Below are positions 309-7,286 of a stretch of 64,000 nucleotides of DNA, piece by piece. Source of the DNA: Obrimoposthia wandeli (lineage: Eukaryota). The stretch spans positions 1 to 64,000 of the forward strand of contig CDROCS010005513.1 of the NCBI GenBank assembly GCA_977020255.1. The letters are read 5' to 3'. The notes under the pieces are model-generated. The model saw only the letters and a program-made list of their open reading frames with translations. It was not told where the DNA came from and ran no database searches. How positions within the stretch are numbered: the stretch's first letter is position 1; each line of letters starts with the position of its first letter. A program made the position numbers and the translations under genes.

Positions 309-341
309 TTAACACCGTATGCTTTTTTGATACGGTGTTAA
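309..341. terminator. Hairpin between convergent genes (likely terminator)
   Basis: Perfect 12-bp inverted repeat TTAACACCGTAT / ATACGGTGTTAA with a 9-nt loop, lying between two convergent stop codons. Confidence 0.55.
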
Positions 342-378: not shown

Positions 379-2136
379 TTAATAAGCAATTCGCTTATTA
401 TTTTGCAAGTGTGTATAACTCACATTATCACTCACCGAGCCGCCACCCATAGTGCCACAACCTAAAGTCCAAGATAAATTCAGACCATTATCAGCACCAA
501 TACAGCCTTGAGTACCTGCAGTCGAAACCAATACACGGCTCACCTGCACGACCGCGCTGAAAGCACGTACTCTGTTTTTATCATTGGTATGGATAATCGC
601 AGTATGGCCCTTCCCTTCTAACTCTAAAATTTCATACGCATGGTCTAAAGCCATCTTGTCACTTTCATTACGAATAAATGACAATACCGGCGCTAACTTC
701 TCACGCAATAAAATGGAAGAAAAATCATAAGGCTGCACTTCAGCAAGTATCAACTTAATATCATAATTACGTCCGATCCCTGCTGCTGCACAAATATCCG
801 CCGCAGACTGGCCAATAAATTCAGCTTGCAAACCTTTACCATTAGCAAAAATATTAGCCAGTAGCAATTCGCGCTCAGCCTCAGTTAATACTACGGCACC
901 ATAGGCTTGCATATTGAACAAAAAATTATCAACAATTGCACAATCGACTACCAGATTATTTTCACTGCCACAGACAACACCGTTATCAAACGCCTTACTG
1001 TTGATTACTTTTCTTGCAGCATCTTCAACATTGCAATCATCACAAATCCAAACAGGGGCATTACCTTTCCCCACACCAATAGCGGGCGTACCCGAAGAAT
1101 ACGCACTCTTCACCATAGAAGGACCACCCGTCGCTAGAATCATACTAATGTCGTCATGAGTCATGTACGCATTCGTTACTTTTCGATTCGCCGCAAGCTC
1201 AGGTGTTTGCACTAAATTTTCTGGAGCCCCGAATCGTTTCAATACTTGGCGAATAATATCAACCGTTTTCTCTCCCACCAAACGGCCCTTACGATGAGAA
1301 CTAATCACGATGGCATTACGTGATTTTAAGCTAATCAATGTTTTAAATACGGTCGTCTCTACAGGGTTAGTAATCGGAATCATGCCGAATACAACACCGA
1401 TCGGCATTGAAACTCTTTCAATGCCATTAGCTTCCAATTCAATAGCGCCATTACCTGGTTTATTAACCAAAGAGTCTGCGACATCCAAAGAGCCTAATTT
1501 TATTTTTAAAATTTTATGCTCAACAACTCCCATTCCCGATTCTTGTTGCGTTAGCTCAGCAAGATCTTTCGCTTGAGCATAAATTGCTTTTGCAATTTCG
1601 GTGATAATTTCATCAACCGTGTTTTCGGGCCAAGATAAAAATTCTTCATGTGCCAATCTGGCCAATGTCATTTGTTTATCAACCGAAGGAATTCTGGCTA
1701 TTTTTAAAGCAGCTTGTTGGTTTAAAGGCTGAGATTTTCGTACACGTTGAATAAGCGATGCATTGAATAATTTTAGAAATTCCTGGTAAGCCAGCTCATC
1801 GATTTCTTGTAATTCTTCCAACTTGCTAGCGGATAAAAATAGCACTTCTGCCGCTTCAGTCACCTTAACCGTCATGGCTCTTGGCTCATCTGCAATAAGG
1901 CTCATTGCCCCCAAAAGATCACCTTTACCATAATACTCCAAGGCTATATCAGCACTGACATCAGCATCATAATACTGAGTGACTAATTGCCCACTCAATA
2001 TATAAAAACAACCATCTGGTTGATCACTTTGCTTAAACAAAAACTCTCCCAATTGAAAACTTTTTACCAAACAATATTTCTTTAAACGCTCAACTTCATT
2101 CCTTGGGAATGATACTGCGGTTGGGACATTCATCAC
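379..2136 (-). CDS. Cyclic-nucleotide-binding domain fused to CoA-acylating aldehyde dehydrogenase (AdhE N-terminal / EutE type)
   Basis: aa ~1-135 have cNMP-domain hallmarks (LFKQSDQPDGCFYILSG; GDLLGAMSLIADEPRAMTV). The rest follows the AdhE ALDH domain (ESGMG, PIGVVFGMIPITNP, ATGGPSMVKSAYSSGTPAIGVG, catalytic FDNGVVCGSE, TLGCGTMGG). No Fe-ADH domain follows. Confidence 0.85.
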   Translation of the reverse strand: MMNVPTAVSFPRNEVERLKKYCLVKSFQLGEFLFKQSDQPDGCFYILSGQLVTQYYDADVSADIALEYYGKGDLLGAMSLIADEPRAMTVKVTEAAEVLFLSASKLEELQEIDELAYQEFLKLFNASLIQRVRKSQPLNQQAALKIARIPSVDKQMTLARLAHEEFLSWPENTVDEIITEIAKAIYAQAKDLAELTQQESGMGVVEHKILKIKLGSLDVADSLVNKPGNGAIELEANGIERVSMPIGVVFGMIPITNPVETTVFKTLISLKSRNAIVISSHRKGRLVGEKTVDIIRQVLKRFGAPENLVQTPELAANRKVTNAYMTHDDISMILATGGPSMVKSAYSSGTPAIGVGKGNAPVWICDDCNVEDAARKVINSKAFDNGVVCGSENNLVVDCAIVDNFLFNMQAYGAVVLTEAERELLLANIFANGKGLQAEFIGQSAADICAAAGIGRNYDIKLILAEVQPYDFSSILLREKLAPVLSFIRNESDKMALDHAYEILELEGKGHTAIIHTNDKNRVRAFSAVVQVSRVLVSTAGTQGCIGADNGLNLSWTLGCGTMGGGSVSDNVSYTHLQNNKRIAY

Positions 2137-2149
2137 ATCTTCCTTAAAT

Positions 2150-2167
2150 TAAGCATAAATTTGCTTA
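2150..2167. promoter_or_regulatory. Palindromic candidate operator in divergent promoter region
   Basis: TAAGCA-TAAATT-TGCTTA, in the 172-bp gap between the cNMP-ALDH gene and ORF 2309. Confidence 0.35.
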
Positions 2168-2308
2168 TATGATTTTCGAATAACGTTGCATTCTTATATA
2201 AGAATACCTACAATCCTTACACAAAATGCGCCAGAACGGAATGCTTATTAACTACTCAGGGAGAGTCTTAAGGCGTAATAACAAGAGAGTCACCACAAGG
2301 GATAGGTT

Positions 2309-3532
2309 TTGGATAAATTACGTGCAAAAGCAGTAGAAAGTATTCTAGGCATATACTCACCGTTTTATATTAAAGATATGAAACTCGATGCTGAACATGA
2401 ACTTTTTACCATTCAGCTAGATGAAATAAACAATAAAAATAAATCAATAACATCGCGCTTTAGAAGCACTTCAAAACACATCACTTATTGCTGGCAACAT
2501 GTAAAACTGGGTCGCTTTAATACCCAAATAATTTTCAAAAGCTCAGAATCAAATTTTAATCGTTTAACAAGACTAGTCTGCCCTTCTTTTTTAGGATTAG
2601 CAGAACAAAAATACACCAAGCAAGCCGAAGAACTTATTTTATTTGCTCATGGAAAAAAAATAAGTGCCGATATAATTTCGACCTTAACAGGTTTGCAAGC
2701 TGACGATATTAAACGCTTCATCCTTGATACTGAAAGCAACCAAATAACTCAAACTACCAGCAATTTATTGCCATTAGAAACGGATGCTATTTGGATTAAG
2801 ATCATTAAACGGGAATTGCCGTTAAAAACCAGTCAAACCCCTTTAAGAATGCTACTTCACAAATTAGAGCTGAGCGAAATAAACAACAGTGATAGCTCTG
2901 TATTACAAGAGTCCGTTGCAACATTACGTGCCTTCTTCATTAAAAACAAAGCCAACCTTACCTCAGAATATCAGCAAATTGGGGCAAAAAAAGAAGAAGT
3001 ACAAAGCCCTCTAGAAAAACCTGTTACACAAAAAGCAGGGGCTAGCAGACTCACACCCGCACACCCAGTATGGGACAACATTTTAACTGAGAAATTTTCG
3101 TTGATGTCATCAAACTTGGCATTTAACCTCTACATATCTCGTTTAAAGAATCTTTATAACAAAGACTTATCCAGCTCAGAAAAACGTGACATTGTTATTG
3201 AGCTAATGAAATATCTAAAGAAAAATATCGCCAGCTTACGTAATGAACTTATTGCTATTAAGAAAATTGCAGAGACGATTGATAGCGAGCCCAAAGACAA
3301 TAACATTCCAGATAAGTCAGACGCTATTTGGCAAGACATACTTAATGAACGCGTAGAAATTAAAAGCAGCAAGCTGAATCTAAATTTATTGCTGGTAAAA
3401 CTTAAGAGCCAAACGGCCAAAGGTTTTGAGCAAGAATCATCAGAAGAACTTCATCAGTTTTTTAGTGACAACTATAGAAGCTTGAAACATGAAATAGAAA
3501 GCTTATCAATTTGCAAAGCTGAAGCCGTTTAA
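2309..3532 (+). CDS. Hypothetical protein: ISL3-transposase-like N-terminal/HTH region plus three ~70-aa internal repeats
   Basis: TTG start after AAGGGATAGG. LGIYSPFYIKDMKLD, CWQHVKLGRFNTQI and KYTKQAEELILFAHGKKISADIISTLTGLQADDIKRFI parallel the ISL3 N-terminus. Repeats are P...DAIW..I / P..HPVW..I / P...DAIW..I. No DDE domain. Confidence 0.7.
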   Translation: MDKLRAKAVESILGIYSPFYIKDMKLDAEHELFTIQLDEINNKNKSITSRFRSTSKHITYCWQHVKLGRFNTQIIFKSSESNFNRLTRLVCPSFLGLAEQKYTKQAEELILFAHGKKISADIISTLTGLQADDIKRFILDTESNQITQTTSNLLPLETDAIWIKIIKRELPLKTSQTPLRMLLHKLELSEINNSDSSVLQESVATLRAFFIKNKANLTSEYQQIGAKKEEVQSPLEKPVTQKAGASRLTPAHPVWDNILTEKFSLMSSNLAFNLYISRLKNLYNKDLSSSEKRDIVIELMKYLKKNIASLRNELIAIKKIAETIDSEPKDNNIPDKSDAIWQDILNERVEIKSSKLNLNLLLVKLKSQTAKGFEQESSEELHQFFSDNYRSLKHEIESLSICKAEAV

Positions 3533-3562: not shown

Positions 3563-4564
3563 ATGAGTAACGTACAAATTACATCAGCATTAGTCGACCT
3601 AGAGACCTTAGTCGATAAGATTAATCAGCGAGAGTTTTTGATCATTGCCGCTGACGAGAAGATATTAAAACAACTGCCATCAGGTAACTGGATTGCAGGT
3701 ACTATTCCATACTTCATGGGTCAAGAAGGCGGAGAAATCAGCCAAGATAAAGCGTTTGTAAATACAATTGAAGGCCTTAATCTTAGCAACCAACCGCGTA
3801 TCATGCCATATGATATAAACTCAATTAAAAACATCGCCCAAGATGCTCCTGAAAATGGTTTCACCATTACCATTTTACCCGCGGGTAGCGCAATTCATGC
3901 GGAATACGCAGAGAACGCTCCGGGCTATGACAACATGTTTTTCTCACCAATTATTGGTTGGGTAGCCGGAAGTCACTTAGAACAAAACGATGCTCAACCA
4001 CAAGTCGGGTTTGGTACTGCAAACATGTTAATGACTGATAAAGCCATTGCAATGCATGTTCCTTTGTCTGATAGCCAATTTGCCAACATCAACATTGTGA
4101 ACTTATTTGAACAAGGCAACGGGCCAAAAATCAGCTTCAATGAAACTGGATTTTCAGCGAATGACTGCATGATCGATGGTAAAGCCGCTAAGTTATCTGA
4201 ATATGTACAAAATAATAATATCGATACCCGCCTACCTTTAGTCGCGGATTATAATGGTGTGAATATCAACGTATCGATTAAAGAATTACTCAGTGGTTCT
4301 GTTGATTTCTACGCGCCTATTTTTAAGAATGTTCAATATCAATTCGCCAACCCCGTTGCGGATTATGTGAGCGAGCTGAATAAATCCATCGCAAGCCAGC
4401 AGATTCCAGAAAACTGTTTCTCCTTTAACTGTATATTAAACTTTTTATATGCGGATTTAGAAAATAAAAAGACTGCTGAACTAACCGGTCCTTTTACTTT
4501 TGGTGAAATTGCTTATCAGCTACTGAACCAAACACTCGTCTACTTGAGCATTGAAAAAGCTTAG
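3563..4564 (+). CDS. FIST-like stand-alone sensor protein (probably DUF6976 family)
   Basis: LPSGNWIAGTIPYFMGQEGG near the N-terminus. C-terminal FSFNCILN and GPFTFGEIAYQLLNQTLVYL resemble FIST_C motifs. RBS AAAGGA, 30 bp after the preceding gene. Confidence 0.7.
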   Translation: MSNVQITSALVDLETLVDKINQREFLIIAADEKILKQLPSGNWIAGTIPYFMGQEGGEISQDKAFVNTIEGLNLSNQPRIMPYDINSIKNIAQDAPENGFTITILPAGSAIHAEYAENAPGYDNMFFSPIIGWVAGSHLEQNDAQPQVGFGTANMLMTDKAIAMHVPLSDSQFANINIVNLFEQGNGPKISFNETGFSANDCMIDGKAAKLSEYVQNNNIDTRLPLVADYNGVNINVSIKELLSGSVDFYAPIFKNVQYQFANPVADYVSELNKSIASQQIPENCFSFNCILNFLYADLENKKTAELTGPFTFGEIAYQLLNQTLVYLSIEKA

Positions 4565-4579
4565 ACTATTAGTAAGAGT

Positions 4580-5035
4580 CTAAACTTTCGCCGCTCGCAT
4601 CCAGCTGATTTGTGCATACAAGATCACGGCTGCAGCGGCTGTCCCCATCGGAAAAAGCGGCAATAATAAAATACCATAAACCCACACAATCGCCTGCTGC
4701 CATAAACCTGCCTGTGCTATCGAATACTTTACCAATAAATTAAAAATAATACTGGGAATCGTGATCGTAAAAAATATAGCAGAAAACCCTAACAAGAAAT
4801 GCATATTCTCTGACATACCCTCACGGGGTGCCGCCGCATTAAAGATACCCAACATAACCCCCATAAACAGTGCAATAAAAACGGCAAAGATAGTTATTAC
4901 ATTAACGGCAATACAAGCAGCATTGACCTTTTCCTGTAAAGACTCGGCTTCTTGTTGAGCATGCTGAGCAGACATACTTGAGGATACATCTGAACTCACA
5001 TCTGAACTCACATTTAAAGGCATCGCGATAACCAT
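4580..5035 (-). CDS. Small inner-membrane protein, about 3 TM helices; start uncertain
   Basis: Three hydrophobic segments after a Ser-rich N-terminus that contains a duplicated 12-bp unit (SSDV). Confidence 0.55.
   Translation of the reverse strand: MVIAMPLNVSSDVSSDVSSSMSAQHAQQEAESLQEKVNAACIAVNVITIFAVFIALFMGVMLGIFNAAAPREGMSENMHFLLGFSAIFFTITIPSIIFNLLVKYSIAQAGLWQQAIVWVYGILLLPLFPMGTAAAAVILYAQISWMRAAKV

Positions 5036-5195: not shown

Positions 5196-7286
<2,091 letters not shown>

Follow-up and report, generated by a model that had tools for sequence, protein, structure and literature searches.

In the 64,000-nucleotide stretch analysed here (the window; positions 1 to 64,000 of contig CDROCS010005513.1, assembly GCA_977020255.1, from Obrimoposthia wandeli), a gene on the reverse strand close to the left end encodes a protein that joins a domain of the cyclic nucleotide-binding (CNB) fold to a coenzyme A (CoA)-acylating aldehyde dehydrogenase (ALDH). 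That this fusion is real is confirmed by database E-values far beyond chance and by the recurrence of the architecture in more than 120 protein clusters. On balance, the protein is probably a short-chain aldehyde/acyl-CoA enzyme under allosteric control, whose ligand would not be a classical cyclic nucleotide (cNMP), and serves as the output of a conserved three-gene module. The most informative result lies outside the coordinates covered by the initial annotation of the gene: it is the conserved three-gene neighbourhood, together with the displacement that occurs in it. The value of the finding lies in this module and in the non-canonical pocket of the CNB domain. The coordinates of the relevant features are given in Table 1.

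The fusion protein and its family

The initial annotation, made from the DNA letters alone, had placed a cNMP fold ahead of a complete ALDH domain, and profile searches and structure prediction bear this out. The Pfam hidden Markov model (HMM) cNMP_binding (PF00027) matches residues 25-110 with 55.3 bits against a cut-off of 27.5 (E 6.7e-15), over profile positions 2-86 of 89. In an AlphaFold2 (AF2) model computed with a 74-sequence alignment, residues 23-102 form a beta-barrel (predicted local distance difference test score, pLDDT, mostly >90) followed by helices, and the helix at residues 114-146 runs into the ALDH core. With an HMM match above the gathering score and a barrel-plus-helices model, the N-terminal domain is a member of the CNB superfamily. 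Foldseek searches with the whole model returned ALDH matches only, with poor TM values due to the two-domain geometry.

The Pfam Aldedh match spans residues 134-411 (E 1.3e-22), and residues 144-585 are matched by the NCBIfam profiles for the ALDH half of AdhE (402 bits, E 3e-120), for acetylating acetaldehyde dehydrogenase (TIGR02518, 373 bits) and for SauS (311 bits). These scores fall below the equivalog cut-offs (951 for AdhE, 620 for EutH_ACDH, 600 for SauS) and, judged in this way, the ALDH of the fusion is a separate subfamily and not an equivalog of any of the three. The catalytic Cys that had been read from the motif GVVCGSE is present as Cys389 (codon 970-972) in FDNGVVCGSE. His511 lies in GHT (codon 604-606), the NAD-binding ATGG occupies residues 335-338, and GVGKGNAP (residues 354-361) replaces the Glu-containing loop of hydrolytic ALDHs, there being no general-base Glu. 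C389, H511, N257, ATGG and GxGxGN are intact and invariant in the 74 aligned members, and W363 and N393-N394 are among the family-specific invariants. Residues 9-447 of E. coli AdhE (6ahc) align to the ALDH part, and the protein ends at the equivalent of AdhE ~447-448, where the linker between the ALDH and alcohol dehydrogenase (ADH) halves starts, as had also been proposed. The ALDH part matches AdhE 6ahc and the Listeria (3k9d) and Geobacillus (5j78) proteins with E ~1e-79. Since the Cys loop, the GHT His, ATGG and GxGxGN are all present, the enzyme is assigned by sequence to the CoA-acylating ALDHs of the AdhE-N/EutE/PduP/SucD clade.

Two narrower identities were considered and rejected. 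A bifunctional AdhE is incompatible with the end of the protein at the AdhE linker, and Pfam gave no Fe-ADH domain. A microcompartment enzyme of the EutE/PduP kind was discarded because the N-terminus is the CNB domain and shell genes are found nowhere within 8 kb; the neighbouring genes code for a MAPEG protein, a protein here called X, a DUF6976 protein, a small membrane protein, FadH and a radical-SAM protein. Translation of the fusion probably starts at the ATG at 2133, giving 584 amino acids (aa), since a Shine-Dalgarno sequence (AAGGAAG) lies 5 nt before this codon and homologues are 584 aa long.

A word-indexed protein search revealed that the fusion is not a one-off, as the initial annotation had taken it to be, but a widespread family visible in the databases. 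The members, 45-93% identical and 577-586 aa long, nearly all carry both Pfam domains, and fused proteins still rank first when the ALDH domain alone is used as the query. The closest relatives (92-93% identity) are from Oleispira, the genus to which the gene itself is attributed; others come from Bermanella, Thalassocella, Marinibactrum, 'Pseudomonas sp. HK3' and marine metagenomes, and the hosts belong to the marine Oceanospirillaceae, Saccharospirillaceae and Cellvibrionales. In a 586-aa member from Reinekea (P0125) the N-terminal domain is unrecognised by Pfam. The supposition that the fusion had not already been characterised held up: no description was found in literature searches on the fusion, on DUF6976 and on Oleispira proteomics, and a 2007 survey of CNB domains has no ALDH fusion among its entries (PMC2246266). 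The two alkane-induced ALDHs of O. antarctica (PMC7318663) were rejected as candidates, being at other named loci; acetaldehyde dehydrogenase, AdhE and a cyclic-nucleotide protein go unmentioned in that report. The fusion is an uncharacterised, moderately widespread family that combines two known kinds of part, a CNB switch and an acylating ALDH.

Ligand pocket, linker and candidate ligands

Direct alignments to PKG and PKA place G76-A77 of the fusion on the Gly-Glu of the phosphate-binding cassette and R86 on the cassette Arg ('dePRamtv' against 'dePRsati'), in agreement with the initial reading of the pocket as G-A-M-S-L...P-R, with the Arg kept and the ribose-binding Glu changed to Ala. Among 119 full-length family members, to which all pocket and linker counts refer, position 77 is Ala in 82, Val in 15 and Ile in 8, with other residues in the remainder; it is always small or hydrophobic and is never Glu or Gln (0/119). 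Arg86 is present in 60 members, 56 of which also have Gly42 in the beta2-3 loop, and the Arg occurs in none of the 20 sequences of a Bermanella-type clade with His42. The classical cassette, F-G-E-[LIV]-A-L...[PV]-R-[ANQV] with both Glu and Arg, is not found in the fusion protein. Given that no member has the ribose-binding Glu and that about half of them lack the phosphate-binding Arg, the family taken together does not appear to be a classical receptor of cyclic AMP (cAMP) or cyclic GMP (cGMP). The co-occurrence of Gly42 and Arg86 matches the co-evolution of Gly169 and Arg209 that Kannan et al. described for working phosphate clamps (PMC2246266), suggesting that Arg-type members, this one included, have probably retained the ability to clamp an anionic group; the pocket differs in the remaining half of the family. 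In the Oleispira clade, the half-cassette retained (Gly42, Arg86 and 'PRAMT') points to an anionic ligand, for example a phosphate or a carboxylate.

It is conceivable, if rather unlikely, that the enzyme is a genuine cAMP- (or cGMP-) regulated ALDH, at least in the Oleispira clade, with the Arg86/Gly42 clamp and the 'PRAMT' P-helix sufficing and the Glu dispensable as it is in Epac, which still binds cAMP. By sequence, the domain finds its best PDB matches in the cNMP-binding domains of PKG and PKA, the cassette aligns with theirs residue for residue except at the Glu, and the Arg and its co-evolving Gly are both retained in about half of the family. By analogy with Epac, which has Gln at the Glu position (Table 1 of PMC2246266), an Arg-containing half-cassette could still bind cAMP, and loss of the Glu alone does not exclude it. 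The invariably small or hydrophobic residue at position 77 speaks against such binding, as even the Gln of Epac is never found there. Furthermore, half of the family lacks the Arg and yet has kept the domain, the invariant linker and the module, which makes a cNMP an unlikely candidate for a ligand shared by all members. A look for a cyclase in this genome drew a blank, a result that carries no information either way.

Several other residues of the domain are well preserved: G49 occurs in 100% of the members, Q36 and C43 in >90%, and positions 57 and 59, on the beta4-5 hairpin, are always acidic. In the least saturated Oleispira pairs, dN/dS amounts to 0.066-0.079 for the CNB domain against 0.027-0.039 for the ALDH domain, values that indicate purifying selection on the CNB domain and not decay. 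The distance between F120 and G203 is exactly 83 residues in 115 members, with a helix sequence only ~20% identical. A linker of fixed length but free sequence is what would be expected of a mechanical relay, and this constitutes the main argument for allostery, an indirect one. Taken with the lack of the Glu, the presence of the Arg in about half of the members and the purifying selection, it is compatible with the initial proposal that the enzyme may be switched allosterically by a ligand other than cAMP.

The same domain might instead be a ligand-free structural element, serving in dimerisation, scaffolding or docking to X or DUF6976 and not as a small-molecule sensor, although we think this distinctly unlikely. 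The high variability of pocket residues among clades would suit such a role, as would the lower identity of the CNB domain (~25%, against 56% for the ALDH domain), the Reinekea protein whose N-terminal domain Pfam no longer recognises, the apparent loss of the barrel at locus L087 and its absence from modules with a DmpF-type enzyme (see below). The long C-helix also resembles the dimerisation helix of CRP. What a structural element would leave unaccounted for is the strong purifying selection on the barrel, the co-variation of the Arg with the loop Gly (the signature of a working phosphate clamp), the near-invariant Cys43 beside the pocket and the conserved acidic pair at 57/59.

The three-gene module and displacement of the fusion

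Nine of ten fusion genes looked up in other genera are divergent from an X-DUF6976 gene pair, with outer flanks that differ. These nine loci are from Thalassocella, 'HK3', Bermanella, two metagenomic lineages, P0122 and three loci of one assembly. The tenth is locus L089 of Marinibactrum halimedae, discussed below; the 1.2 kb upstream of its fusion gene hold no called gene. In the window, a hairpin separates the fusion gene from a convergent MAPEG gene, so that the fusion gene forms a transcription unit of its own, running away from the two genes that come next. Two variants of the arrangement were seen in passing. In assembly GCA_029936105.1 (loci L090, L091 and L092) there are three separate ALDH/X/DUF6976 trios, whose fusions are 58-65% identical to one another and have three pocket types; they are either paralogous modules of one genome or the product of a mixed bin. 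In a Gynuella metagenome-assembled genome (MAG; L051:5559-10295), the X-DUF6976 pair occurs twice in tandem, and an acylating ALDH is absent from the 5 kb around the first DUF6976 gene.

An alignment scan for DUF6976, restricted to one genome per species, yielded at least 549 loci, the best 80 of which were examined by open reading frame (ORF) clustering and tblastn. X and DUF6976 are paired in about 70 of these 80. The divergent slot next to the pair is filled by the CNB-ALDH fusion in Oceanospirillaceae, Saccharospirillaceae and a few Cellvibrionales (22 rows), and by a ~335-aa protein in Cellvibrio and other Cellvibrionaceae (23 rows). The latter carries PF09290 and PF01118 and scores 324 bits with NF006157 (cut-off 166) and 275 bits with TIGR03215, matches that identify it as a DmpF/MhpF-type acetylating acetaldehyde dehydrogenase, non-homologous to the fusion. 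In a quick maximum-likelihood tree of DUF6976, all loci with an ALDH partner fall into one 52-row clade (support 100). Thalassocella, which has the fusion, is sister to a DmpF-bearing Cellvibrionaceae row (100 SH-aLRT), implying that the partner type has changed at least twice. In more distant DUF6976 loci, from beta-proteobacteria and Pseudomonas, X is short (~250 aa) with a single repeat, and the 5 kb around DUF6976 contain no ALDH; an apparent further family of ORFs near DUF6976 in beta-proteobacteria ('family 6') was dismissed as antisense ORF-calling noise. Since two unrelated enzymes swap in the same slot, what is constant beside long X and DUF6976 would be an acylating aldehyde dehydrogenase activity and not one protein. 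Seen from these sequences, the CNB domain is an accessory of one of two enzyme solutions.

The alignment of X shows a conserved N-terminal part of ~150 aa and then three helical repeats of ~75 aa, each with a P-x-W motif. Pfam, NCBIfam and a search with PDB profiles gave X sub-threshold matches only, and no family. Weak Zn-ribbon and helix-turn-helix (HTH) signals fall in the N-terminal part; the matches are Zn_ribbon_ISL3 (5 of 25 members), HTH_23 (3 of 25) and the HTH PAI domain of the Sleeping Beauty transposase (E 0.077), and they suggest a weak link to transposases.

The model of DUF6976 (pLDDT 88.9; predicted TM-score, pTM, 0.87) superimposes on the FIST domain of FBXO22 with a VIA Z of 11.5 over 232 aligned residues (root-mean-square deviation, rmsd, 3.8; Foldseek E 2e-4) and on predicted bacterial FIST_N+FIST_C proteins, including fusions to methyl-accepting chemotaxis proteins (MCP), histidine kinases and GGDEF domains, with a TM of 0.81 over 318 residues. 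The DUF6976 sequence matches none of the FIST families of Pfam; from the model, the protein is predicted to fold as a FIST_N+FIST_C sensor. Cys202 and Cys290 are invariant in DUF6976, and His112, His138 and His165 nearly so. Bacterial FIST proteins (NosP) bind heme.

The palindrome in the intergenic region may be an operator; it is a candidate site in an AT-rich background. Palindromes of the CTTAT...ATAAG type occupy the equivalent position in a number of loci from Oleispira and Bermanella (L007, L008, L012, L014 and L017). The small membrane protein and FadH genes that follow DUF6976 are conserved only in the Oleispira loci L007-L009. In Bermanella-type loci (L002, L003, L012, L013, L016 and L087), DUF6976 is adjoined by a LysR gene, a 487-aa ALDH and a class-III aminotransferase, a set that resembles an arrangement for omega-amino-acid catabolism but may be plain synteny.

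Table 1. Features of the fusion gene and its neighbourhood (positions in the window; residues are those of the 585-aa translation)
Feature	Position	Strand	Details
Whole gene: CNB-fold domain, linker helix and CoA-acylating ALDH	379-2136	-	585 aa from GTG at 2136; stop codon at 379-381
CNB beta-barrel	1801-2079	-	residues ~20-112
Phosphate-binding-cassette equivalent	1867-1911	-	residues 76-90, G-A-M-S-L-I-A-D-E-P-R-A-M-T-V
Long connecting helix	1699-1797	-	residues 114-146
Acylating ALDH domain	382-1692	-	residues 149-585
GC-containing hairpin, probably a bidirectional terminator	310-340		between convergent ALDH and MAPEG genes; z -3.0 for a 94-nt stretch
Divergent intergenic region	2137-2308		172 bp; perfect 16-bp palindrome ATTCTTATATAAGAAT at 2190-2205, candidate operator
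Partner gene X	2309-3532	+	407 aa; no Pfam family; co-conserved with the ALDH
Partner gene DUF6976	3563-4564	+	PF22396, E 1e-129; predicted FIST_N+FIST_C fold
Predicted membrane protein	4580-5035	-	151 aa; Ala/Ser-rich N-terminus
FadH-type 2,4-dienoyl-CoA reductase	5196-7265	-	

Proposed mechanism and comparison with known systems

The fusion would be a soluble NAD(P)- and CoA-dependent enzyme interconverting aldehyde, CoA and NAD(P)+ with acyl-CoA and NAD(P)H. Its substrate would most likely be an aldehyde of short chain length (C2-C4), because aldehydes of this size are the substrates shared by characterised members of the AdhE/EutE and DmpF/MhpF families. In Arg-type members, the ligand bound by the barrel would be small, non-classical and probably anionic. 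The trigger would be either the filling of the barrel by its ligand or an alteration at Cys43, the near-invariant residue beside the pocket. The fixed-length helix, joining the CNB domain rigidly to the catalytic domain, would then relay the signal and switch the enzyme. X, as a putatively transposase-derived helical-repeat protein, and DUF6976, as a FIST-fold sensor, probably sense a signal and control transcription of the ALDH gene at the 172-bp divergent promoter region. These elements can tentatively be extended to a two-layer module for aldehyde control, which we regard as possible though not probable. In such a module, the FIST sensor and a domesticated-transposase DNA-binding partner would set transcription, the CNB domain would sense a non-nucleotide metabolite (or aldehyde or redox state via Cys43) and gate catalysis, and either of two unrelated folds could fill the enzyme slot.

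Several points weigh against this interpretation. In the AF2 model of the whole fusion (mean pLDDT 82, pTM 0.61) the orientation between the domains is unreliable, and no contact map backs the relay. Members with neither the pocket Glu nor the Arg may bind nothing. The sensor is dispensable for the module, as DmpF-type partners are devoid of a CNB domain, and at Marinibactrum L089 the fusion occurs with neither X nor DUF6976 within 5 kb. P0122, a 447-aa protein encoded on a contiguous Logan contig (L087, Bermanella-like), starts 85 bp from gene X and is without the barrel. Linker-helix codons are, however, still in frame upstream of its called start (L087:5915-6001), and the matching MAG contig has an N-run exactly at the missing barrel (L088:3381-3813); the loss of the barrel is thus unconfirmed. 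The DNA-binding nature of X is based solely on sub-threshold matches, the substrate range is drawn from characterised AdhE/EutE and DmpF/MhpF enzymes and not from this protein, and none of the RNA runs checked for the locus contains it.

The direction of catalysis could also be the reverse: as an acyl-CoA reductase, and not a detoxifying or assimilating dehydrogenase, the enzyme would produce an aldehyde that serves as a signal or as an intermediate in biosynthesis and is sensed or consumed by DUF6976. Relatives of the AdhE and SucD types are reductive in vivo, and the closest structures include a succinyl-CoA reductase (8cei). Between genera, DUF6976 is more conserved than the ALDH of the fusion (52-63% identity against 45-52%) and has many invariant His, Cys, Tyr and Asp residues, a pattern that would fit an enzyme or a sensor acting covalently. 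FBXO22, a FIST protein of humans, is engaged covalently by aldehydes at a cysteine (PMC11208438). Against this, the hosts are aerobes, and the module contains no conserved aldehyde-consuming enzyme. Moreover, oxidation of aldehydes to acyl-CoA is the normal direction for the DmpF/MhpF-type enzymes that take the place of the fusion in Cellvibrionaceae. A reductive role is in our opinion doubtful, and the allosterically controlled dehydrogenase remains the preferred reading.

CNB domains are textbook portable allosteric switches whose known outputs are kinases, channels, guanine-nucleotide exchange factors, transcription factors and a few signalling enzymes. If the present proposal is correct, a CNB switch acting on an acyl-CoA/aldehyde dehydrogenase without the nucleotide-ribose contact would represent a new output and probably a new class of ligand; should the two-layer module prove true, it would be the first instance in which allostery through a CNB fold acts directly on a dehydrogenase of central metabolism. 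The non-homologous displacement provides a functional anchor for DUF6976 and for the helical-repeat protein X, both families without an assigned function. The genera in which the fusion family is common include Oleispira and Bermanella, which are cold-marine and oil-associated, and Reinekea; polysaccharide degraders such as Cellvibrio have related modules. Through this host range the system may bear on how marine heterotrophs handle reactive short-chain aldehydes.

Among enzymes, the closest parallels are the ALDH half of AdhE (6ahc/6tqh; Vibrio 3my7/7dag) and the Listeria 3k9d and Geobacillus 5j78 proteins, which are homologous across residues ~150-584 of the fusion (E 1e-79, 31-37% identity in Foldseek alignments). 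AdhE and stand-alone acetylating ALDHs share with the fusion the Cys-x-S-E loop, the GHT His, ATGG, GxGxGN and the lack of the hydrolytic Glu. Unlike AdhE, the fusion has no Fe-ADH domain, so that spirosome assembly is not expected, and a CNB domain plus helix of ~148 residues precedes the ALDH. EutE and PduP (5jfl, 4c3s) belong to the same acylating ALDH clade, with the same predicted chemistry, and also bear an N-terminal extension before the ALDH core. In EutE/PduP this extension is a short encapsulation peptide, whereas in the fusion it is a folded CNB domain, and there is no shell gene within 8 kb. DmpF/MhpF enzymes (TIGR03215/NF006157) would catalyse the same reaction from the same divergent slot beside X and DUF6976, but have a fold of the semialdehyde dehydrogenase type and no CNB domain. 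They are usually accompanied by the aldolase DmpG/MhpE; in the slot loci they stand alone without it. On the side of the partner genes, FIST proteins, of which NosP is an example, work as stand-alone sensors and modulate a partner from the same operon (PMC12570481). DUF6976 and X resemble NosP and NosK in that a stand-alone sensor is co-encoded with its partner, but the partner of DUF6976 is an unnamed helical-repeat protein and not a histidine kinase.

The sensory domain shares its fold with the CNB domains of PKG (E 1e-9), PKA-R (E 1e-7) and CRP and with the cNMP-EAL protein Bd1971 (6hq3), the last two at E ~1e-4. Like the PKG and PKA domains, the fusion protein keeps the cassette Arg and the beta2-3 Gly; in contrast to PKA, the position of Asp170 is a near-invariant Cys in the fusion family, the ribose Glu is never present and the Arg is lost in half of the members. 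The output, a metabolic dehydrogenase, is outside the 30 CNB families catalogued in PMC2246266. NtcA, CooA and CprK offer examples of CRP/FNR-type CNB domains with non-nucleotide ligands and a non-canonical cassette; the homology to the fusion seen here does not go beyond the shared fold and, unlike the fusion enzyme, they are transcription factors with an HTH output. NtcA senses 2-oxoglutarate through its pocket and a long helix (PMC6243067), and its motif, G-V-L-S-L-L-x4-R (Table 1 of PMC2246266), parallels the Oleispira G-A-M-S-L-I-x4-R more closely than does the consensus of the cAMP binders.

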